A stretch of DNA of 64,000 bases. It comes from Heteronotia binoei. Taxonomy: Eukaryota. Each line of letters begins with the position of its first letter. Positions within the stretch are counted from its first letter, which is position 1. Positions 2,920 through 63,376 of the stretch are shown piece after piece. Location of the stretch: positions 10,416,001-10,480,000 of the forward strand of contig NC_083237.1 in NCBI RefSeq assembly GCF_032191835.1, read 5' to 3'. Position numbers and translations under genes: made by a program. The notes under the pieces were generated by a model, which was not told the DNA's origin, ran no database searches, and saw only the letters and a program-made list of their open reading frames with translations.

Positions 2920-3004
2920 TGTTTGGTGTAGTGATTAAATGTGTGGACTCTTATCTGGGAGAACCAGCTTTGATTCCCCACTCCTCCACTTGCAGCTGCT
3001 GGAA
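2920..3004 (+). mobile_element. Squam3-like SINE, 5' half (split by the Ngaro insertion)
   Basis: Ends at GCTGCTGGAA; the continuation AATGGCCTTGGGTCAGCC resumes at 10045; intact paralogue at 2381-2632. Confidence 0.9.
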
Positions 3005-3190
3005 GGTCCGGCCCTTACCCAGCCGAATCTGCCTGCAGTAATTGAGGCTGGGGGCCGCCTTTGCCCCGCCCGGAAGGAGGAGGGAGCAGGATCACCCGAT
3101 ATACGGGTGTTTTGCTGGGGCGGGGAATCGGGGCTTTATAAGCCTCGGTTTCCCGCCCTCCAACTCACGCAGTTCGGTTTGGGCTCTCTG
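3003..3190 (+). repeat. Split direct repeat A1 (188 bp)
   Basis: No mismatch to A2 (9291-9478) seen by eye. Confidence 0.95.
3064..3175 (+). promoter_or_regulatory. Putative Pol II promoter in repeat A
   Basis: GC boxes CCCCGCCC (3064) and GGGGCGGGG (3117), TTTATAA (3135-3141), Inr-like CTCACGCAGTT about 30 nt downstream; repeated in A2 (TTTATAA 9423-9429). Confidence 0.55.
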
Positions 3191-4000
3191 GATGAGAGCC
3201 TCGTGCGTCCGGAGCGTCGCCTGAGCGGTTGGTCGGCTGGTCCCTGCGGTCCTTCCCGGGTCGGTCTGCGCGTGAACAGCTGATCGGCGCGGCAGAGCTG
3301 ATTATTTCTGGGAGCGAGGGACCGGCGTTGGAGCGTGTTGAGCCTCGGCGGCTTCGGCGGCTTCTTCCACGCTCCGGCGGCGCGTGCGGCCAGCTGATTT
3401 GCGCTGCGAGGCTGAGTTTTGCGCAGCGTCTTCGGGGGCCTGGGAGGTCTGGGCCAGGGGGAAGCTTGCGTTGTGAGCCCTTCGGGCTGTGGGCTGTGGG
3501 TGCGCGGGCGATAGCCGGAGCGGGGCTGTGTGGGTGAAAGTCTTGGGGGCCAGGTAGAGGCCCGAGTAGTGGCCGGCGGGGCGCTGGGGCTTTGCAGGGC
3601 TGGGCTTCGGGCCGGCCACGCTGCCCGGTAAGGAGCGCAGCGTTCTTTCCATTGGTGGTCGCAAGCGCTGGGCCAGTAATACGCAGCTGCCTTGTGGTGG
3701 GGGCCTGTAGAAAAGGGTGCCTGCTGCTTATTGGGGGGCCTTTCTCACTCAGAGTTGAGTGGGTGAAGCACCCGGCCTCCCAGTTGTTAAGCCCTTTAAG
3801 TAGGTAGAACCATAACCCCCCCCCCCCCAATTTTCTTTAGTCCCTGGCCACGTGAGTTGAGCCTGCTGGGCTAGTGGTTGGGGTGGACCTCCTCCGGTGT
3901 GCAGTGGGCTTTTCCTCCAGTCTAGCCCTTCTTTCTACACATTCTTTGTAAGGGAGTGCTGTGGGTGAACCCTGGAGGTGGGTTGCAGTCGTTCCTAGGA

Positions 4001-4192
4001 GAGGGACAGTGGCTCAGTGGTAGAGCATCTGCTTGGTAAGCGGAAGGTCCCAGGTTCAACCCCCGACATTTCCATCTATATCATAAAAAAAAAAAAAAAA
4101 AGGGGGTGGGGTCCAGGCTAGTAGGAGTGAAAGAGCCTCGGCTTTAGACCTTGGAGTGCCGCTGCCTGTCCGAGTAGTCAATACTGTCTTTG
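4001..4192 (+). mobile_element. Diverged tRNA-SINE embedded in the Ngaro 5' leader
   Basis: Same family as 386-602; A box 4010-4020 and B box 4053-4063 intact; internal A17; 3' tail missing; ends about 25 nt before the gag ATG. Confidence 0.85.
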
Positions 4193-4216
4193 GCCTGTGC
4201 CATAGTAGCATTCAAG

Positions 4217-5748
4217 ATGGCTCCCAAAAAAGGTCAGGGTAAATCAAAAGGTAAACAGCCCGCCCGCCCACCTCGTGGGCGGGGCCAGCAGCAGCCTCCG
4301 GTGGAAGAACGGGCCGAAAGTGAGCAGGTGCGGATGGCCATTATGGGTCAGTTGGACGCCCTAGAGCAGGAGAGAGTCGCTAGGGGCGCCCCCATTTGGG
4401 AGGGACGCCGCCGGGCCTCCGGTCGGTCGGCCAGATTGACATTTGAGACGGAATTGCTCGCGCGTCTTTCTGCTTTACAGGGTGGGCCAGCGGAGACTGA
4501 AGCACCACTGGAACCGGACCAGGAGGAGGATCCGGAGGAGGGCCCATCGGGTGTGGCGCCGAGCGGCGGTGCGCAGGGCAGCAGTGAGCTTCGCACCCCG
4601 GGTGACGCTGGGGTCTTCACGGGTGATGGTGGTAAGCCCTTTTGTCAGCCAAGTTATGGGTGGCCGTGGGGCCCCATTCAACCCCCCCCCCACAGCCAGC
4701 GCAGGGTGGGGCATTTTGGGGTGTGGGGCAGCTAGGAGTCAGTGAGCAGTTGGGTCCTGTCCAGCCGTGGGCTTGGGGGTTTCACACACCCAGCCCGCTG
4801 CCCAACTCCGTCATTCTTCCAGTTGGCCAGCAGGTAGGCGCCATCGCGCCACCTGCGGTTTCTACCCCCCCGTCCACACCTGGCATTCTGCCGTGGGGTG
4901 GTCAGCAGTTGGCTCAGATGCAAGGGGCTTGGCCAGGGGCTCAGGGTAGCGGGTGGTTTTACCCGCCTAACCCTTATGCCAGCATTCCCTTTCATGTTCT
5001 TCCATATGGGGATACCTCCTTACCCCTGGGTGACCATTTGACTGTCGCTACGCGGGAGAAAATTCTCCGCGGCGAATTTGTGGATGTCTTCAGCCTCCTA
5101 TTCAGAGAGCTCGAAAAGAAGAGTAAGGACGAGCTCGATGATAAGGAGAAGGAGAAACTGAAGAGGAGGAAAGTAGATAGATCTTGGGCGAACTGGTTGC
5201 CGGGATTTCTGATCTATGCGGGAGTCATTGCAAGGGCGCAGCCGGCCAGGGCGGCCGCCCTCTTTCAATATATTGACATTGTGTATCGGGCGTATACGGA
5301 CTTCGCTGGTGCAGCTTGGCTGCAGTATGACGAAGCTTTCCGGATGCGGGCCGCAGTTAATCCTGGTATGCCGTGGGACCAAATAAACCAGCAGCTGTGG
5401 TTGCAGCTGATGTCCCCGGCGAAACCAAATGCCGGGGACAGGTCCGATAGCGGCCATTTAGTGCTTAGGGGGCAGCAGCAGCAACAGTCTTCTACAGGGG
5501 CCCGCGTCACCGCGGGCCAGTCGGTTCAAACCCGGTTGCTTTGCTGGGAGTTCGCATCCAAAGGTGCGTGTCCCAGGAAGCCCTGTAAGTTCCGGCATGA
5601 GTGCCCCCTCTGCGGCGGACCCCACGCAATGTCGGCCTGTAGCAGATCTAAGTTTAAGCCGGGCAGCAAGCGCCCTGGGGGTGGTGGGGGCGGGCAGAAC
5701 CCTCCTGGAAAAGGGGCCCAGCCCCATCCGCCTGACGGCTCTCAATGA
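4217..5748 (+). CDS. Ngaro Gag-like ORF1, split by a frameshift at a C10 run (4682-4691)
   Basis: ATG 4217 (MAPKKGQGKSKGK...); ORFs 4190-4735 and 4642-5748 join across the poly-C; C-terminal CWEFASKGACPRKPCKFRH-ECPLCGGPHAMSAC (CCCH plus CCHC zinc fingers, 5542-5640). Confidence 0.85.
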
Positions 5749-7330
5749 GTGGCTGAGCTTATACCCGTGCGCGGCCGATGCTCAGTATTTGCGCGACGGG
5801 TTTAGCTTTGGTTTTCGGATTCCCTATCAGGGGCCTAGGGCCCCTTTTTTGGCTACCAACCTGCGTTCTGTTGTTGGACTTGAGCAAGTGGTACGGGAAA
5901 AAATAGCCAAAGAATGTAGGGAAGGAAGGGTCCTAGGACCTTTTGATGCACCACCTGTTCCCACGTTGAGGGTATCGCCCTTGGGGGTGGTTCCCAAGAA
6001 GGTGGCTGGGGAATACCGTATTATTCACCACCTTTCGTACCCCAGGGGAGCATCGGTAAACGATGCTATCCCCGAGGAATTATGCTCGGTGCGTTATACC
6101 TCCTTTGACCAGGCGGTCAAAGTGGTGCGCTCCTGTGGGATCGGTGCAGAGATGGCGAAGTGCGACATTAAGTCCGCTTTTCGCCTCTTGCCTGTTCACC
6201 CCAGGGACTTCGAGCTACTGGGGTTTTGTTTTGATGGAAAATTTTATATGGATAGGGCTTTGCCGATGGGTTGCTCGATTTCGTGCGCAGCGTTTGAGCG
6301 CTTCAGTTCCTTTTTGGAATGGGCGCTCAGGCACAAGGCCGGGGTTAACGCTACAGCGCACTACCTGGATGACTACCTTTTTGTAGGTCCAGCGGGGTCC
6401 GAGCAATGCGCTGATTTGCTGAACGCATTTCAGGAATTAGCCCTCGAACTCGGGGTGCCCTTGGCACACGAGAAGACTGAGGGGCCAAGCACAGTCCTCA
6501 CCTTTTTGGGCATTGAGCTTGACACTCTGCAGCAAACGTCACGTTTGCCGGAGGCCAAGGTCGCTGACCTTAAGGTCAGGCTGGCTACTTTGAAAGGGCA
6601 GCGGAAGGTTTCGCTGCTGGAGCTACAACAGGTTGTGGGCCACCTTAACTTTGCCTGCAAGGTGGTGGCCCCAGGTAGGGCCTTTTGTAGGCGCCTTTGT
6701 GACGCTATGGGCCGGCTGCGCCTCCCCCATCACAGGGCCCGCGTTACTTCTGGAATGCGAGCAGACCTGGAGGTCTGGGAGGAGTTTTTGGAATCTTTCA
6801 ATGGTGTTTCTTTTTGGAGGGAGGATTTGAAGGTAGAGGCCGAGCTTCAGATTTCTTCGGATGCCTCCGGTGCCAACGGTTTTGGGGTATTTTTTAGAGG
6901 ACATTGGTGCGCGGAGCAGTGGCCCGCGGAATGGTTGGACAGCGGGCTCTGCAGGGACTTGACGTTTCTGGAATTTTTTCCCATCCTGGTGGCCGTTTGG
7001 CTCTGGGGGGAGCAGCTGGCCAACCATTCGGTCCTCTTTTGGTGTGATAACTTGGCGGTCGTCCATGTTATCAATTCTTTATCTTCTAAATCGGTGTTAG
7101 TTATGAATTTGGTTAGGTCCTTCACACTGCGTTGCCTCCAGTTGAATATTTTATTCCTGGCCAGGCACGTACCCGGGGTATGTAACGGGGTGGCGGATGC
7201 TCTGTCTCGCCAACAGATGGAGCGTTTTCGAGAACTGGCCCCAGAAGCAGATCAATGGCCAGCGAAAATGCCAGAGGAACTGTGGCGTCTTGGGAGAAGG
7301 AAGCCGGTAGGGCCATTCAGTTGGCACTAG
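5564..7330 (+). CDS. Ngaro reverse transcriptase / RNase H
   Basis: 588-aa uninterrupted ORF; KCDIKSAFR, LPMG, HYLDDYLF; RNase H SSDASG, LEFFPI, CDNLAVV, ADALSR; overlaps gag in the +1 frame. Confidence 0.95.
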   Translation: MRVPGSPVSSGMSAPSAADPTQCRPVADLSLSRAASALGVVGAGRTLLEKGPSPIRLTALNEWLSLYPCAADAQYLRDGFSFGFRIPYQGPRAPFLATNLRSVVGLEQVVREKIAKECREGRVLGPFDAPPVPTLRVSPLGVVPKKVAGEYRIIHHLSYPRGASVNDAIPEELCSVRYTSFDQAVKVVRSCGIGAEMAKCDIKSAFRLLPVHPRDFELLGFCFDGKFYMDRALPMGCSISCAAFERFSSFLEWALRHKAGVNATAHYLDDYLFVGPAGSEQCADLLNAFQELALELGVPLAHEKTEGPSTVLTFLGIELDTLQQTSRLPEAKVADLKVRLATLKGQRKVSLLELQQVVGHLNFACKVVAPGRAFCRRLCDAMGRLRLPHHRARVTSGMRADLEVWEEFLESFNGVSFWREDLKVEAELQISSDASGANGFGVFFRGHWCAEQWPAEWLDSGLCRDLTFLEFFPILVAVWLWGEQLANHSVLFWCDNLAVVHVINSLSSKSVLVMNLVRSFTLRCLQLNILFLARHVPGVCNGVADALSRQQMERFRELAPEADQWPAKMPEELWRLGRRKPVGPFSWH

Positions 7331-8196
7331 CTCCCAGCACCAGGAAGGCGTACGACAGAGCGTCCAATCAATTTCGGGAATTCAGGAGTGCGGCGGCACT
7401 GCCTGACATTTGGCCGTTTCCTGTGGAGCACATTATGCATTTCTGTGTGCACCAGAAGGAAAGGGGCCTGGGACTGAAATCAATTCGGGGCCAACTTGCA
7501 GCATTGGCTTTTGCTAGCAAGGCCCGCGGTTTCCCTGAGTATACTGGCGATTTCAGGGTTAGAAAAATGCTCGAGGGTTGGGCCCGGGAGCGGACCCGGC
7601 GGGTGGATGATAGGCAACCTATATCCCCGTCTGTTCTTCGAGGGTTGTTTGGGGGTTGGCCCTGTGTTTGTTCCTCCCCCTTTGAAGCAGCATTGTTTCA
7701 TGCTGCCTCTCTGCTGGCCTTTTTTGGGGCCTTGCGGGTAAGTGAGCTGGTGGTTCAGTCCAAGGCTGATACCTCTGGGAGGGCGCTCCAATCCAAGGAT
7801 ATCAAAATTTCGGACAGTCAGCTTGTCCTGACAATCCGCCGGTCTAAGACGGACCAAAGGCAGAGGGGCTCTGTCATTACAATCGGTATGTGCTCTATTC
7901 AGGACTTATGTCCGGTCAGGGCTGTCCGGCGGTACATTAGGGTTAGAGGGAACGTTGAAGGCCCCTTTTTAAGGCATGCCGACGGCTCCCCTCTCACCAA
8001 ATATCAATTTTGGAAGATCACAAGTAAGGCTCTGGCCAGGTTGGGTTTACAGGGCTTTAAATTCGGAACACATTCCTTTAGGATTGGGGCGGCCTCCACA
8101 GCCGCTTCTATGGGTTATACGCCCTCGGCCATTCAGCATATAGGCCGATGGCGGTCGTCGGCTTACAAAACTTATGTTCGCCCTTTGGTCACCTAG
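7255..8196 (+). CDS. Ngaro tyrosine recombinase
   Basis: 313 aa; LRVSEL (R), RSKTD (K), HSFR (H-x-x-R), GRW (W), AYKTY (catalytic Y). Confidence 0.95.
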   Translation: MASENARGTVASWEKEAGRAIQLALAPSTRKAYDRASNQFREFRSAAALPDIWPFPVEHIMHFCVHQKERGLGLKSIRGQLAALAFASKARGFPEYTGDFRVRKMLEGWARERTRRVDDRQPISPSVLRGLFGGWPCVCSSPFEAALFHAASLLAFFGALRVSELVVQSKADTSGRALQSKDIKISDSQLVLTIRRSKTDQRQRGSVITIGMCSIQDLCPVRAVRRYIRVRGNVEGPFLRHADGSPLTKYQFWKITSKALARLGLQGFKFGTHSFRIGAASTAASMGYTPSAIQHIGRWRSSAYKTYVRPLVT

Positions 8197-8264
8197 ACGG
8201 AGGTGGGGGGCCTGCTGGTGTTGTATTGTGGTTACTGTTTGTTGACAGTTCTTTGTCTTTTCAG

Positions 8265-8860
8265 GTGCTGGTGCGCGTGGTGAGAGACGTCGCGTTCTCA
8301 TCTGCGGGCACAGCATGGTTTTCTGGGCTGCCCATTTCGCCAGACGATCTTCAGTGGGCACCCAGCTTGGCCTCAGTGCGTGGGCCACTGTGGATTGGCT
8401 GGGTCGTCGGGGGCTGCGCTGGCCCGGGATCATGCCCCTGCTTTTTAAGGAATGGAAGGCAGCACCTCCACACATTCTGGTCGTCCACTTAGGTGGGAAC
8501 GACTTGGGGCTGCTGCGTGGGAAGGCTCTATCCCAGCAGGCCTTGGCTGACCTCCGGGAAATTCGGCGGAGGTGGCCTGGTGTTATCCTGGTTTGGTCGG
8601 CAATTTTGCCGCGTAGAGTGTGGAGGCATGCCATTTCACCGGGCGGGGTGGAACGAGCCAGGCGAAAAGCTAATCGGGCTATTCAGAAAGCCATGGAAGG
8701 GGGACTAGGAATTTTTCTCCCACATCCGGCCATACGGGTCGAGCAAGTTGACCTGTATCGGCCGGATGGTGTTCACCTTTCTGATTTGGGTAACCGGGCC
8801 TTTTTGGACGAAATTCGGCAGGGGGTGCGGTTGGCTCTGGGCCAACCGTTGGGGCGCTAA
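8265..8860 (+). CDS. SGNH/GDSL-type hydrolase exon of Ngaro (first ATG 8315 lies after the nucleophile)
   Basis: Block I ICGHS (8300-8314), block II G (LGRRG), block III GGND, block V DGVH; in-frame TGA at 8243; acceptor TTCTTTGTCTTTTCAG ending at 8264. Confidence 0.85.
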
Positions 8861-8889
8861 TGCCAAAGCAGAGGCTTGACATTGGCGGT

Positions 8890-9290
8890 GGCTAGAGGAG
8901 GTTGGCCACAGGGTTTCCCAGGGGAGCACCTATGGCCTAGCACCGTTGGTGCGGTGGTCTGCATGAACCGTAGATGGGCTAGACGGCTCAGTGCGGGGAT
9001 TGCAGATCACAGGGAGCCTCACCTGGGCGGATCTTTCCACGGGGATTGATGCCGGCTCGGATGGTGGTGGCTCGAGGCCTGGCCGCTCAGCTACAACCCG
9101 AATTTGGCGGGCTTGTGCTGGGGGCAGGGTGGCTCGCCCTTTGGACAAGGCGGGGTCCGGGGTTGACCCCAGGGCTTGTCTGGTCAGGTTTTCACCCCTC
9201 CTGCCAGTTACAGTTATTTAATGTTTTAATAAAGCGGCCCGGTTTTAAACCCAACACTTGTGTCTGCTTCTTCATTCCGACTGGGGGGGC
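8890..9290 (+). repeat. Split direct repeat B1 (401 bp)
   Basis: No mismatch to B2 (9644-10044) seen; offset 754 bp. Confidence 0.95.
9228..9233 (+). terminator. Polyadenylation signal AATAAA in B1 (copy in B2 at 9982-9987)
   Basis: AATAAA followed by CA and a GU-rich TTGTGTCTG element. Confidence 0.65.
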
Positions 9291-9478
9291 AAGGTCCGGC
9301 CCTTACCCAGCCGAATCTGCCTGCAGTAATTGAGGCTGGGGGCCGCCTTTGCCCCGCCCGGAAGGAGGAGGGAGCAGGATCACCCGATATACGGGTGTTT
9401 TGCTGGGGCGGGGAATCGGGGCTTTATAAGCCTCGGTTTCCCGCCCTCCAACTCACGCAGTTCGGTTTGGGCTCTCTG
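9291..9478 (+). repeat. Split direct repeat A2
   Basis: Identical to A1; abuts B1 (GGGGGGGC|AAGGTCC). Confidence 0.95.
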
Positions 9479-9643
9479 CCCACCCGCCCTCCCTTTGGCA
9501 GTACAGGCGTTTGCTGGTCGCCTTTTTGGGGCCAGGTAGGAATTTTTTCGCTTCCACACAATTGGCTTCAGTGGGAGTGTTTTTCGCCTACCTTGTACTG
9601 CCTTGTAGGTTAGGATTTGTTAGCGGTAGTTGTTTTGGTCGCA

Positions 9644-10044
9644 GGCTAGAGGAGGTTGGCCACAGGGTTTCCCAGGGGAGCACCTATGGCCTAGCACCGT
9701 TGGTGCGGTGGTCTGCATGAACCGTAGATGGGCTAGACGGCTCAGTGCGGGGATTGCAGATCACAGGGAGCCTCACCTGGGCGGATCTTTCCACGGGGAT
9801 TGATGCCGGCTCGGATGGTGGTGGCTCGAGGCCTGGCCGCTCAGCTACAACCCGAATTTGGCGGGCTTGTGCTGGGGGCAGGGTGGCTCGCCCTTTGGAC
9901 AAGGCGGGGTCCGGGGTTGACCCCAGGGCTTGTCTGGTCAGGTTTTCACCCCTCCTGCCAGTTACAGTTATTTAATGTTTTAATAAAGCGGCCCGGTTTT
10001 AAACCCAACACTTGTGTCTGCTTCTTCATTCCGACTGGGGGGGC
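9644..10044 (+). repeat. Split direct repeat B2
   Basis: Identical to B1. Confidence 0.95.
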
Positions 10045-10218
10045 AATGGCCTTGGGTCAGCCATAGCTCTTGCAGGAGTTGTCCTTAAAAGGGCAGCTGC
10101 TGTGAGAGCCCTCTCAGCCCCACTCACCTCACAGGGTGTCTGTTGTGGGGGAAAAAGATATAGGAGATTGCAAGCCGCTCTGAGTCTCTGATTCAGAGCG
10201 AAGGGCAGGGTTTAAATC
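10045..10218 (+). mobile_element. Squam3-like SINE, 3' half
   Basis: Continues the SINE interrupted at 3004; (TTC)n tail. Confidence 0.9.
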
Positions 10219-10435: not shown

Positions 10436-11392
10436 ATGGAAAACCATACAGTTGTGGCGGAATTTATTCTACTGGGCTTCCCCAGCATCCAAAAGGTGCG
10501 AGTTCTAGTCTTTGTGGGTGTTCTGGTGATGTACATCTTAACTGTCAGCGGAAACATCATCATTGTGACCACCGTGGCTTATGATTCCACTCTCCACAAG
10601 CCGATGTACTTCTTTCTTGGCAACCTCTCTTTCTTGGGAATCATCTATGTATCTTCCACAATCCCCAAGCTTTTGATTAATTTGCTAACAGTCAAGAAAT
10701 CTATCAGCCTAGCTGGTTGTAAAGCTCAAGCCTTCTCCCATTTTTTCTTGGGAGCCACAGAATTTTTCCTCCTCACCGCCATGGCTTATGATCGGTACAT
10801 GGCTATATGTCACCCTCTTCATTACCACACCATCATGAGCACTAGGGTTTGCATTCAGCTGGCATGTGGCTCGTGGTTTGGTGGCCTCATGACTGTCTTA
10901 GTGCAGACAATTCTGGTGTTCCGGCTGCCGTTCTGTGGACCCAACATCATCAATCACTTCTACTGCGATGTTGGGCCATTGTTAAAGCTGGCTTGCACCA
11001 ACACTCGCCTCATTGAATGGATGGTCTTCATCATTGCGACTGTTGTGGTATTCAGCAATTCTCTTTTGACAGTGGTTTCCTACATATTCATCATCACGAC
11101 TGTGATGAGAATCCCATCTGCATCTGGGAGACAGAAAGCCTTCTCTACTTGCATTGCTCACTTGGTGGTGGTCATCATGTTATACGGGGCAATCATCTTT
11201 ATATATGTCAGGCCAACAGGTCATTCCTCGTTGAATATGAACAAAGTGGTATCCCTCCTAAATACTTTGGTCACCCCTCTATTGAACCCTTTTATATACA
11301 CCCTCAGAAACAAGGAAGTGAAAGATGCCCTGAAAAAAGGATTAATTAAGAATAAAATCTTTGAGAACAACAAATGGGAAATAAATTTATGA
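10436..11392 (+). CDS. Olfactory receptor OR-a, class II, family 6-like (318 aa, intact)
   Basis: [37 protein letters not shown]; splice acceptor TTTTCCTCAG (10428-10429) 6 nt before the ATG. Confidence 0.95.
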   Translation: MENHTVVAEFILLGFPSIQKVRVLVFVGVLVMYILTVSGNIIIVTTVAYDSTLHKPMYFFLGNLSFLGIIYVSSTIPKLLINLLTVKKSISLAGCKAQAFSHFFLGATEFFLLTAMAYDRYMAICHPLHYHTIMSTRVCIQLACGSWFGGLMTVLVQTILVFRLPFCGPNIINHFYCDVGPLLKLACTNTRLIEWMVFIIATVVVFSNSLLTVVSYIFIITTVMRIPSASGRQKAFSTCIAHLVVVIMLYGAIIFIYVRPTGHSSLNMNKVVSLLNTLVTPLLNPFIYTLRNKEVKDALKKGLIKNKIFENNKWEINL

Positions 11393-33649: not shown

Positions 33650-33929
33650 TCTGAGAACTCTGAGATCGGCATACATGGAGATATAAACGATTCCTGATAA
33701 ACAGCACAGTATGTGGAACCAATAATGCAGGAAGGTGGCACAGTAAGTGGAACCAGTTGGAACTTCTCATATTCTGCTGGAGGGTATAAGATTCTCCTGA
33801 TGTCTGTATCTTCTTTGCAACTTGAATATTAAATTAGAAACTTCAGCACTGTTTCATTGTTATAAATATCAGCATGGACTATACCATGCATAGAGTAAAC
33901 TATTGTTGTCAAGTGAAGAACCTCATAGG

Positions 33930-34147
33930 GGAGGGATGGTGGCTCAGTGGTAGAGCATTTGCTTGGTAAGCAGAAGGTCCCAGGTTCAATCCCCGGCATT
34001 TCCAACTAAAAGGGTCCAGGCAAATAGGTGAGAAAAACCTCAGCCTTAGACACTGGAGAGCCGCTGCCAGTTTGAGTAGACAATACTGACTTTGATGGAC
34101 TAAGGGTCTGATTCAGTATAAGGCAGCTTCATATGTTCATATGTTCA
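33930..34147 (+). mobile_element. tRNA-derived SINE (paralogues 46796-47012, 58026-58243)
   Basis: A and B boxes, (ATATGTTC)n tail. Confidence 0.85.
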
Positions 34148-46514: not shown

Positions 46515-47819
46515 TCTGAGAACTCTGAGATCGGCATACATGGAGATATAAACGATTCCTGATAAACAGCACAGTATGTGGAACCAATAATGCAGGAAGG
46601 TGGCACAGTAAGTGGAACCAGTTGGAACTTCTCATATTCTGCTGGAGGGTATAAGATTCTCCTGATGTCTGTATCTTCTTTGCAACTTGAATATTAAATT
46701 AGAAACTTCAGCACTGTTTCATTGTTATAAATATCAGCATGGACTATACCATGCATAGAGTAAACTATTGTTGTCAAGTGAAGAACCTCATAGGGGAGGG
46801 ATGGTGGCTCAGTGGTAGAGCATTTGCTTGGTAAGCAGAAGGTCCCAGGTTCAATCCCCGGCATTTCCAACTAAAAGGGTCCAGGCAAATAGGTGAGAAA
46901 AACCTCAGCCTTAGACCCTGGAGAGCCGCTGCCAGTTTGAGTAGACAATACTGACTTTGATGGACTAAGGGTCTGATTCAGTATAAGGCAGCTTCATATG
47001 TTCATATGTTCATTACTTCCTTGCTGGGTTGTTTGTAATTGGAAATTAGTAGCATGTTGTTAAGTTGTGTATCAGCATATTCAGTGTTGGTGGCTAAATA
47101 TGACACTGCTGTTGAAATATGCTCAAAAGCAATTGATTTCTTCAGGTCATTTATCGTTTGATATCAGCTCACTTTGGGTTGTGACTACTCATTTCTGGTC
47201 TGCAGCATTCTTAAGTCTGGCATATACTCAGAACATATGTGAAGCTGATGGGTTAAATGGTTCAGAGTCATTTAAACCTAACAACTGTCTGGTGGACCTG
47301 TTGGATTTAAATGGTTATGAGCATTAACCCCCACTTTGAAGTGCCGGGAAGTAAAGCCAGCTGGTCAAATGGCTGCCAGCCATTTAACCCTTCTTGAGCA
47401 TCCCCCCCTCTTTCTTCTGGCCCTGGCAAGCCACGACTGGCAGAAATGTGGAAGAGAAATCCCTTCCAAGGTGGTCCCTCCCCATGTCTCCCAGCAGTGA
47501 CTTGCTGTGCCTAGGAGTAAGGGGAAAACCAATTTGCCAGACGAGCACAGTTTAAGTGGGGTCTTTTGGGGTTGGTTCAGGGGCTGTTCTGAACCCTAAA
47601 GCAAATAAAACCATCTTTTTTGGGGGGTTGTGCCCACCCTAATATCTAGTGCTTAAAATTATGTATTCCTTTCTGCTTGACACAATCAAGATACATTATT
47701 AGTGAAAGGCCAGAAGCAGAAATGCTGGGAAAGAATATTTATGTGCTATTTGATGATGGGGATTTCTCTAAACAGCACCCCTGGAAACTGAGTGAATGAG
47801 ACAGATTTTATTGTTTTGG

Positions 47820-57788: not shown

Positions 57789-58851
57789 TCTGAGAACTCT
57801 GAGATTGACATACATGGAGATATAAACAATTCCTGATAAACAGCACAGTAGGTGGAACCAATTGGAACTTCTCATATCCTGCTGGAGGGTATAAGATTCT
57901 CCTGATGTCTGTATCTTCTTTTCAGCTTGAATATTAAATTAGAAACTTCAGCACTGTTTCATTGTTATAAATATCAGTATGGACTATACCATGCATAGAG
58001 TGAACTATTGTTGTCAAGTGAAAAACCTCATAGGGGAGGGAAGGTGGCTCAGTGGTAGAGCATCTGCTTGGTAAGCAGAAGGTCCCAGGTTCAATCCCCG
58101 GCATCTCCAACTAAAAGGGTCCAGGCAAATAGGTGAGAAAAACCTCAGCCTGAGACCCTGGAGAGCCGCTGCCAGTTTGAGTTGACAATACTGACTTTGA
58201 TGGACCGAGGGTCTGATTCCATATAAGGCAGCTTCATATGTTCATTACTTCCTTGCTGGGTTATTTCTAATTGGAAATTAGTAGCATGTTGTTTAGTTTT
58301 GTATCAGCATATTCAGTGTTGGTAGCTAAATATGACACTGCTGTTGAAATATGCTCAAAAGCAATTGATTTCTTCAGGTCATTTATCGTTTGAGATCAGC
58401 TCACTTTGGGTTGTGACTACTCATTTCTGGTCTGCAGCATTCTTAAGTCTGGCATATACTCAGAACATATTGGACTGGCATTCAAAGGGGGGCGGGTGTA
58501 TGTGAAACTGATGGGTTAAATGGCTCAGAGTCATTTAAACCTAACAACTGTCTGGTGGACCTGTTGGATTTAAATGGTTATGAGCATTAAACTTCTTGGT
58601 TTCATCCCCCACTTTGAAGTGCAGGGAAGTAAAACCAACTGGTCAAATGGCTGCCTGCCATTTAACCTTCTTGAGCACCCCCCCCTCTTTCTTCTGGCCT
58701 TTGCAAGCCATGATTGGCAGAAATGTGGAAGAGAAATCCCTTCCAAGGTGGTCCCTCCCCATGTCTTCCAGCAGTGACTTGCTGCGGATGGGAGTAAGGG
58801 GAAAACCAATTTGCCAGACGGGCACAGTTTAAGTGGGGTCCTTTTGGGTTG

Positions 58852-63162: not shown

Positions 63163-63376
63163 GAACATATGAACATATGAAGCTGCCTTATACCAAATCA
63201 GACCTTTGGTCCTTCAAAGTCAGTATTGTCTTCTCAGACTGGCAGCGGCTCTCCAGGGTCTCAAGCTGAGGTTTTTCACACCTATTTGCCTGGACCCTTT
63301 TTTGGAGATGCCAGGGATTGAACCTGGGACCTTCTGCTTCCCAAGCAGATGCTCTACCACTGAGCCACCGTCCCTG
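63163..63376 (-). mobile_element. tRNA-derived SINE, near full length
   Basis: Reverse complement of the 386-602 family. Confidence 0.85.

Follow-up and report, generated by a model that had tools for sequence, protein, structure and literature searches.

A start-less SGNH esterase gene in a Ngaro retrotransposon of Heteronotia binoei and its probable expression by splicing from gag

How can a gene be translated when it lies behind three others and has no start codon of its own? The question is raised by a Ngaro (tyrosine-recombinase) retrotransposon of about 7 kb in Heteronotia binoei, which spans approximately positions 3003–10046 of the window, that is, of the whole stretch of 64,000 nucleotides (nt) analysed here (NCBI RefSeq assembly GCF_032191835.1, contig NC_083237.1, positions 10,416,001–10,480,000, forward strand). 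Three of its genes specify Gag, a reverse transcriptase/RNase H (RT/RH) and a tyrosine recombinase (YR), and the fourth, predicted to encode an SGNH esterase, lacks a start codon. For twenty years, catalogues of vertebrate Ngaro elements have carried this open reading frame (ORF) as an extra one, and the means by which a start-less frame behind three genes is translated have gone unexplained. Published descriptions treat the hydrolase as an additional ORF of unknown function and do not address its expression (PMC9210276, PMC6681497, PMC7192593). The comparisons presented below indicate that the esterase is most likely made from a spliced subgenomic mRNA, in which a donor within gag (4631/4632) is joined to an acceptor just ahead of the hydrolase domain (8264/8265). 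Its use in vivo, and in this copy in particular, is deduced from sequence comparison. A conserved gag splice would answer the question of translation and, if true, means that a tyrosine-recombinase retrotransposon uses alternative splicing in the style of retroviruses. A literature search found no description of a spliced Ngaro message; the founding paper of Goodwin and Poulter (2004), and that of Poulter and Butler (2015), lay outside this search, so an earlier mention is possible. The fusion proteins themselves are already in RefSeq as uncharacterized LOC entries, and the term 'hidden', which an earlier note on this sequence had applied to the mRNA, does not hold.

The start-codon problem and the candidate splice

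The last ORF of the element matches Pfam Lipase_GDSL_2 (E 5.8e-11, over the cutoff) and has the features by which SGNH/GDSL hydrolases are recognized, namely the catalytic blocks I (GxS), III (GxND) and V (DxxH) and the alpha/beta SGNH fold; a conserved glycine is also found in the region of block II (WxGxxG). The AlphaFold2 model of this product has a predicted local distance difference test score (pLDDT) of 92 and a predicted template-modelling score of 0.89. In it, strand beta1 comprises residues 8–14, Ser16 begins helix 1, and the next residue, Met17, corresponds to ATG 8315. Both beta1 and the nucleophile Ser16 lie upstream of Met17, and a product begun at this ATG would therefore be without the central strand and the nucleophile. 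Frame reading bears out the earlier note on the position of the nucleophile motif I-C-G-H-S (8300–8314), which was said to lie before the first ATG of the frame (8315) and after an in-frame TGA (8243). This TGA is the nearest upstream stop, there is no ATG among codons 8246–8312, and the first ATG is immediately 3' of the Ser codon.

Routes to the hydrolase that do not use the gag donor have to be considered, and they form part of an alternative explanation in which the two-exon gene models described in the next section are annotation artefacts and the hydrolase is made from unspliced or differently spliced RNA. Translation could begin at a non-AUG codon between 8246 and 8300, but the sole near-cognate start codon between 8246 and 8312 is ATC 8300, which lies inside beta1. 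Ribosomes could reinitiate after the YR stop (8194–8196), which is 49 nt before the hydrolase frame opens. A frameshift or readthrough from YR into the hydrolase was ruled out, as the two frames do not overlap and the in-frame stop TGA 8243 stands between them. Finally, a donor in the leader, upstream of gag, could be used, and stronger-scoring donors do occur there (e.g., 3627, CCG/GTAAGG; here and below a slash marks the splice point), but translation would then first begin at ATG 8315, and the enzyme would be dead.

The donor within gag reads GTGATGGTG/GTAAGCCC in the window. The acceptor, TTTTCAG/GT in the context TTGACAGTTCTTTGTCTTTTCAG/GTGCTGG, has its first exon base at 8265 and is 41 nt before the G-H-S motif. 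When joined, the coding parts of the two exons (415 + 596 = 1011 nt) give an open frame of 336 amino acids (aa) with a single terminal stop, and the residues at the junction are ...TGDG/GAGARGERRRVLICGHSM. The coordinates, sites, phase 1, length and open frame given in the earlier note were all reproduced base for base. Splice sites across the element were scored with a rough matrix used for ranking only, and by this measure the donor is ninth of 426 GT sites and the acceptor fifth of 460 AG sites. They are good sites but not unique ones, and the weight of the evidence lies in the comparison with relatives.

Joining 4631 to 8265 would remove the gag core, RT/RH and YR, and the 336-aa product would comprise the first 138 residues of Gag (basic N-terminus, two helices, disordered linker) followed by the complete esterase. 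Unspliced RNA would have to persist too, as in retroviruses, being the source of Gag, RT/RH and YR and also the template, while the spliced RNA would serve the fusion. The donor lies inside the gag coding sequence and the element would therefore have to balance the two RNAs.

The same build in other squamates, and related proteins beyond

With the hydrolase as query, 60 proteins were retrieved from the database; many are from lizards and 320–352 aa in length, near the predicted 336 aa. The N-termini of the lizard fusion proteins align with the Gag N-terminus (Gag-N) of the window. Their shared plan starts with M-P-P-K-K-G...K-G-K-Q-P-A-K-R-P and an acidic S/D/E patch, and continues with a helix (I-L-A-R-I-A-A-L-E), a basic stretch, a second helix (L-x-R-L-S-A-L-E), a low-complexity linker and I-L-I-C-G-H-S.

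Exon structures were solved for ten loci in five other squamate species: Eublepharis macularius (L001, L008–L010), Rhineura floridana (L002, L003), Anolis carolinensis (L004), Anolis sagrei (L005) and Gekko kuhli (L011). In all of them, exon 1 runs from the gag ATG for 385–466 nt (415 in the window), and the intron is 3431–3615 nt long (3633 in the window) and holds the gag core, RT/RH and YR, as found by tblastn with the window proteins. Nine loci could be followed through to the stop codon, and in these exon 2 measures 593–605 nt (596 in the window); the Gekko model has an extra, short third exon. Every solved intron is GT-AG and in phase 1, the exon before it always ends in G, and the split codon G/GT together with phase 1 was found in all seven loci compared. 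The L008 family of Eublepharis is particularly close, its donor (GGGAGATG/gtaagt) and acceptor (ttgtcttttcttag/GTGCTGTGGCG) matching those of the window (GGTGATGGTG/gtaagc and tttgtcttttcag/GTGCTGGTGCG) nearly base for base, with an identical split Gly codon, G/GT, then Ala. An alignment of copies from other squamates, amphibians and fish had been proposed in the earlier note as a check; in the squamates, both sites and phase 1 are kept at the solved loci. A conserved donor in gag and an acceptor before the 3' gene, in compatible phase, is the arrangement expected of retrovirus-like splicing, and it is present in the window and at the ten loci of the five species. In two unspliced contigs from other sources (L006 and L007, 47–63% protein identity), I-C-G-H-S is likewise preceded, at a distance of about 40 nt, by a pyrimidine tract with AG; there is a stop just upstream and no ATG.

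Cluster listings contain dozens of such LOC entries per genome, many with several isoforms, and Gnomon isoforms usually require transcript support. These listings also include proteins of like size in Hemicordylus and Elgaria. Hundreds of 'uncharacterized protein LOC' entries in the RefSeq sets of lizards and frogs would be explained as products of transposable elements.

Further afield, a profile search of 1.8 billion representatives returned 5057 esterase relatives, and in many of these the N-terminus is extended by 100–300 aa. An extension before the esterase is found in models from the frogs Bombina, Ascaphus, Ranitomeya, Pelobates, Mixophyes, Eleutherodactylus and Engystomops, the caecilian Rhinatrema and the fish Cyprinodon. 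One Bombina gene (P0126) has a span of 6190 nt for 334 aa. In three other proteins (P0138, P0214, P0153), sequence resembling the YR C-terminus or the RT N-terminus precedes the esterase in one ORF; these may represent a different esterase fusion in other families, or read-through gene calls. The route of esterase expression may vary between families. Giant predicted proteins of 1300–3100 aa with two to six esterase stretches each (P0095–P0101) probably stem from gene models in which several elements have been strung into one.

RNA data, points against the splice, and the state of this copy

An intron-less, joined form was found in a Logan contig, L012 (1677 nt, run SRR6291285). After a leader of 448 nt it has a single uninterrupted ORF (449–1633) for a protein of 394 aa, P0125, which is one of the relatives from the profile search and not a gene model. 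Over its whole length this protein can be aligned with the lizard fusions. It opens with a Gag-N-like region that has a basic patch, S-S-D-E-E-E-E and two helices, continues with ...A-A-G-D-G-E-A-P... and then passes into the esterase; there is no gag core, RT or YR. Depending on whether the run is of RNA or DNA, the contig would be a spliced mRNA or a retro-copied one, either of which would imply a splice. No mention of the run was found in the literature search. The central claim of the earlier note, that splicing builds a Gag-N/SGNH fusion, draws support from the two-exon, phase 1 models at the ten loci of five species and from L012; no junction RNA was seen for this genome.

Several points weigh against the splice. 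The RNA data were contigs of one metatranscriptome study, the only one in which related sequence was found; they were compared with positions 3350–9349 of the window, and the 4631–8265 joint was seen in none of them. The contigs are about 7% diverged and sparse over gag-N. One contig of 1126 nt from an RNA run is unspliced and continuous through 8264. Contigs of this kind can attest what is present but not what is missing, unspliced RNA or DNA would be found in any case, and the comparison is uninformative. The two-exon models may be based in part on ab initio prediction, or on one another. The family of L012 is distant, with 44% identity in the esterase, and its exact junction cannot be placed. 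Just before its hydrolase, moreover, the stretch 963–1034 bears a weak likeness, in another frame (reading M-E-R-F-R-x-L-A-P...), to the C-terminal end of RT/RH (window 7217–7288, E 0.002), which may be due to chance or may be what is left of another junction. Some relatives (the Anolis loci and the Logan proteins P0012 and P0018) have an in-frame ATG before GHS, a feature named in the earlier note as contrary evidence; the gag splice is therefore not the sole possible route in every family. A prediction of a Gag-N homodimer (two copies of residues 27–95) scored 0.02, with a partner pLDDT of 48, which is evidence neither for nor against self-association. Lastly, gag is frame-broken in the window, and this copy may be non-autonomous or silent.

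The upstream ATGs of the two Anolis loci lie at 6743–6837 (L004) and 6720–6898 (L005), mostly inside the pyrimidine tract of the intron, and in the families with such codons a start independent of gag is conceivable.

For the explanation by annotation artefact, the lack of junction RNA here, the contig that continues across 8264, the leader donors and the upstream ATGs of some relatives all speak in its favour. It has to contend with the start-codon and frame evidence given above, with the intron-less contig L012, and with the fact that 11 loci in six genomes, from more than one annotation source, agree in phase and in junction codon (the Gekko kuhli locus has a submitter-style tag, which suggests a different source), a pattern hard to obtain by chance. 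It is considered improbable, and the splice from gag to the esterase is retained as the preferred reading.

Even if the splice is real in the family, this particular copy could be a silent or non-autonomous passenger that makes no product despite having inherited intact splice sites. Its gag is split over two frames (4217–4735 and 4642–5748), and homology to the Gag of L008 and L011 follows the first frame up to 4672–4687 and the second from 4768–4819. In relatives, gag is one ORF of 462–518 aa that reads straight through the donor. The break falls between 4687 and 4768, at or just past a run of ten C, and may be a real indel or an assembly error. Other signs of a passenger are a host short interspersed element (SINE) in the leader (3993–4192) and the failure to find near-identical RNA among the metatranscriptome contigs. 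On the other side, such C runs are a typical place for assembly errors, the A and B repeat pairs of the element are each 100% identical and the insertion is therefore very recent, and the break is downstream of the donor, the fusion ORF therefore being intact. On balance, it is somewhat unlikely that this copy is such a passenger.

Another conceivable use for the donor would be in a short gag intron of 191 nt (4632–4822). Joining 4631 to 4823 gives one open frame, restoring a Gag of 446 aa, and the donor would then be constitutive. Homology to Gag, however, runs through the would-be intron in both frames (to 4672–4687 and from 4768), relatives read straight through the donor, and acceptor 4822 is only 21st of the 460 AG sites. 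This intron was rejected as very improbable.

The class of the element is clear from its structure and gene content. Its limits are set by split direct repeats in the order A1 ... B1 A2 B2, as in Ngaro elements, and it has RVT_1 and Phage_integrase domains but no methyltransferase; a Pfam scan of its ORFs found no families beyond these two and Lipase_GDSL_2. A second Ngaro copy was looked for within the window and none was found. The coordinates of all features are given in Table 1.

Some further observations concern the repeats and surroundings. The leader SINE, upstream of the gag ATG, is tRNA-derived and carries an A-run; copies of about 74% identity are present at 382–550, 33923–34094, 46788–46959, 58028–58199 and 63215–63375, and its contig depth is enormous in all RNA runs. 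The B1 region (8750–9349) has a summed depth of 100–740 in three RNA-run contig sets, compared with about 10 in the interior of the element, and possible reasons are RNAs that share their 3' end, the presence of two B repeats, or similar sequence at other sites. SINE-like sequence is found on both flanks of the element (2371–2598, 2910–2993 and 10019–10185), as if it had inserted into a SINE, and the right-hand match begins 28 nt inside B2. About 400 nt past the 3' end of the element is an intact ORF of 318 aa (10436–11392) with the olfactory-receptor hallmarks MAYDRY and NPFIY.

Table 1. Features of the Ngaro element and of its predicted subgenomic mRNA, in window coordinates.
Feature	Position	Strand	Remarks
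Exon 1, coding part (415 nt): gag ATG (4217), 138 codons and 1 nt	4217–4631	+	Aligns with N-termini of the fusion proteins of other lizards
Predicted product of exon 1	4217–4631	+	Basic N-terminus, acidic patch, two short conserved helices, low-complexity linker
Candidate splice donor GTG/GTAAGC	4629–4637	+	Phase 1, split codon G/GT; last exon base 4631
Predicted intron of the subgenomic mRNA (3633 nt)	4632–8264	+	Contains remaining gag, RT/RH and YR
Branch-like TTGAC (includes in-frame TGA 8243), pyrimidine tract and candidate acceptor AG	8241–8264	+	Tract and AG kept in all relatives
Exon 2, coding part (596 nt): complete SGNH hydrolase and stop	8265–8860	+	Pfam Lipase_GDSL_2; 60 homologues
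Block I, G-H-S	8306–8314	+	Nucleophile Ser 8312–8314; G, H and S nearly invariant in alignment A1
Block III, H-L-G-G-N-D	8486–8503	+	Oxyanion Asn 8498–8500; GGND 8492–8503; columns invariant in alignment A3
Block V, D-G-V-H, catalytic Asp and His	8765–8776	+	D167 and H170 invariant in alignment A3
gag frame-break zone	4642–4768	+	Two gag frames overlap at 4642–4735; ten-C run 4682–4691
RT/RNase H ORF, within the intron	5564–7330	+	Pfam RVT_1, E 7e-12
Tyrosine recombinase ORF, within the intron	7255–8196	+	Pfam Phage_integrase, E 2e-6
A1 split direct repeat, 5' end of element	3003–3190	+	100% identical to A2 (9291–9478)
B1 repeat	8890–9292	+	100% identical to B2 over 403 nt; AATAAA at 9228–9233
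A2 repeat	9291–9478	+	100% identical to A1
B2 repeat, 3' end of element	9644–10046	+	Identical to B1

The predicted fusion protein and known systems

A model of a natural fusion protein, P0010, has helices at residues 39–56 and 74–95, a disordered stretch at 97–141 and a confident SGNH domain at 146–332. It is tentatively suggested that the shared Gag N-terminus lets the esterase co-assemble with Gag or bind the RNA of the element, and that the enzyme acts on membranes or lipids, a role put forward for the ORF1 protein (ORF1p) of the zebrafish element ZfL2-1. On a broader and equally tentative view, Ngaro elements of tetrapods, and perhaps of fish, may regulate a retrovirus-like splice that makes of the Gag N-terminus a particle protein which resembles ORF1p and bears an esterase. 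No earlier spliced subgenomic mRNA would then be known from the DIRS order, and the esterase might have been shared or exchanged with the CR1/L2 long interspersed elements (LINEs) for a common membrane or lipid step. If the splice is true, CR1/L2 LINEs and Ngaro, which are unrelated classes, reach the same plan of helical N-terminus, linker and esterase, and the proposed lipid or membrane step of retrotransposition becomes testable in a second system.

The closest comparison is with ZfL2-1 ORF1p, in which a coiled coil at the N-terminus dimerises, a linker of low conservation follows, and the esterase binds liposomes of negative charge (PMC3905857). The earlier note had drawn this parallel, and it is well founded: the ZfL2-1 esterase (4c1b_A) is the sole match below 1e-3 in a sequence comparison with solved structures in PDB (E 7.7e-4, about 21% identity), and it follows a coiled coil. 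The two proteins have in common a helical region at the N-terminus, a linker that is poorly conserved and, at the C-terminus, an SGNH esterase of about 170–190 aa, together with basic peptides and the lack of an RNA-binding fold. They differ in that the zebrafish protein is the product of a single ORF of a non-LTR (long terminal repeat) element, whereas here the architecture would be assembled by predicted splicing in an element of the tyrosine-recombinase type. The ZfL2-1 protein has been shown to dimerise and to bind lipids; the Ngaro fusion is known from sequence and models. It resembles the esterase-type class of LINE ORF1p but is no member of it, as the host element is of the YR type and the protein would need a splice. 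In structure, the best Foldseek match of the esterase is platelet-activating factor acetylhydrolase Ib alpha (3dt6, 1wab; E 4e-7, template-modelling score 0.62 by target, 20% identity), and the top matches also include GDSL lipases. The acetylhydrolase is a cellular enzyme that lacks a Gag-like N-terminus and is unconnected with mobile elements.

In its expression, the predicted message is most like the env-type subgenomic mRNA of retroviruses, with a donor in gag, an acceptor before a 3' gene that lacks its own start, an intron that holds gag-pol, and the need for unspliced and spliced RNA to coexist. In avian leukosis virus, the env mRNA retains the gag start codon and first codons. Only a handful of Gag residues are shared there, compared with 138 in the Ngaro fusion; the retroviral product is a membrane glycoprotein, whereas a soluble esterase is predicted here; and Ngaro, as a YR retrotransposon, has neither LTRs nor integrase.

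Ngaro elements with an SGNH ORF were known previously (Goodwin and Poulter 2004, as cited in PMC9210276), including DIRS-53_XT and DIRS-54_XT of Xenopus. The present element has the same order of gag, RT/RH, YR and SGNH ORF and the same kind of split direct repeats. For the Xenopus elements, an overlap of all ORFs has been described; here, by contrast, the hydrolase frame opens only 49 nt after the YR stop. Captured esterase genes are also found in bdelloid LTR retrotransposons and Terminons, which carry a GDSL ORF3, those of the LTR elements being said to come from spliced messages (PMC5408684). These, too, have a GDSL/SGNH esterase as the extra 3' gene of a retroelement, but they belong to another host and another class of element, and a fusion to Gag-N is reported for none of them.

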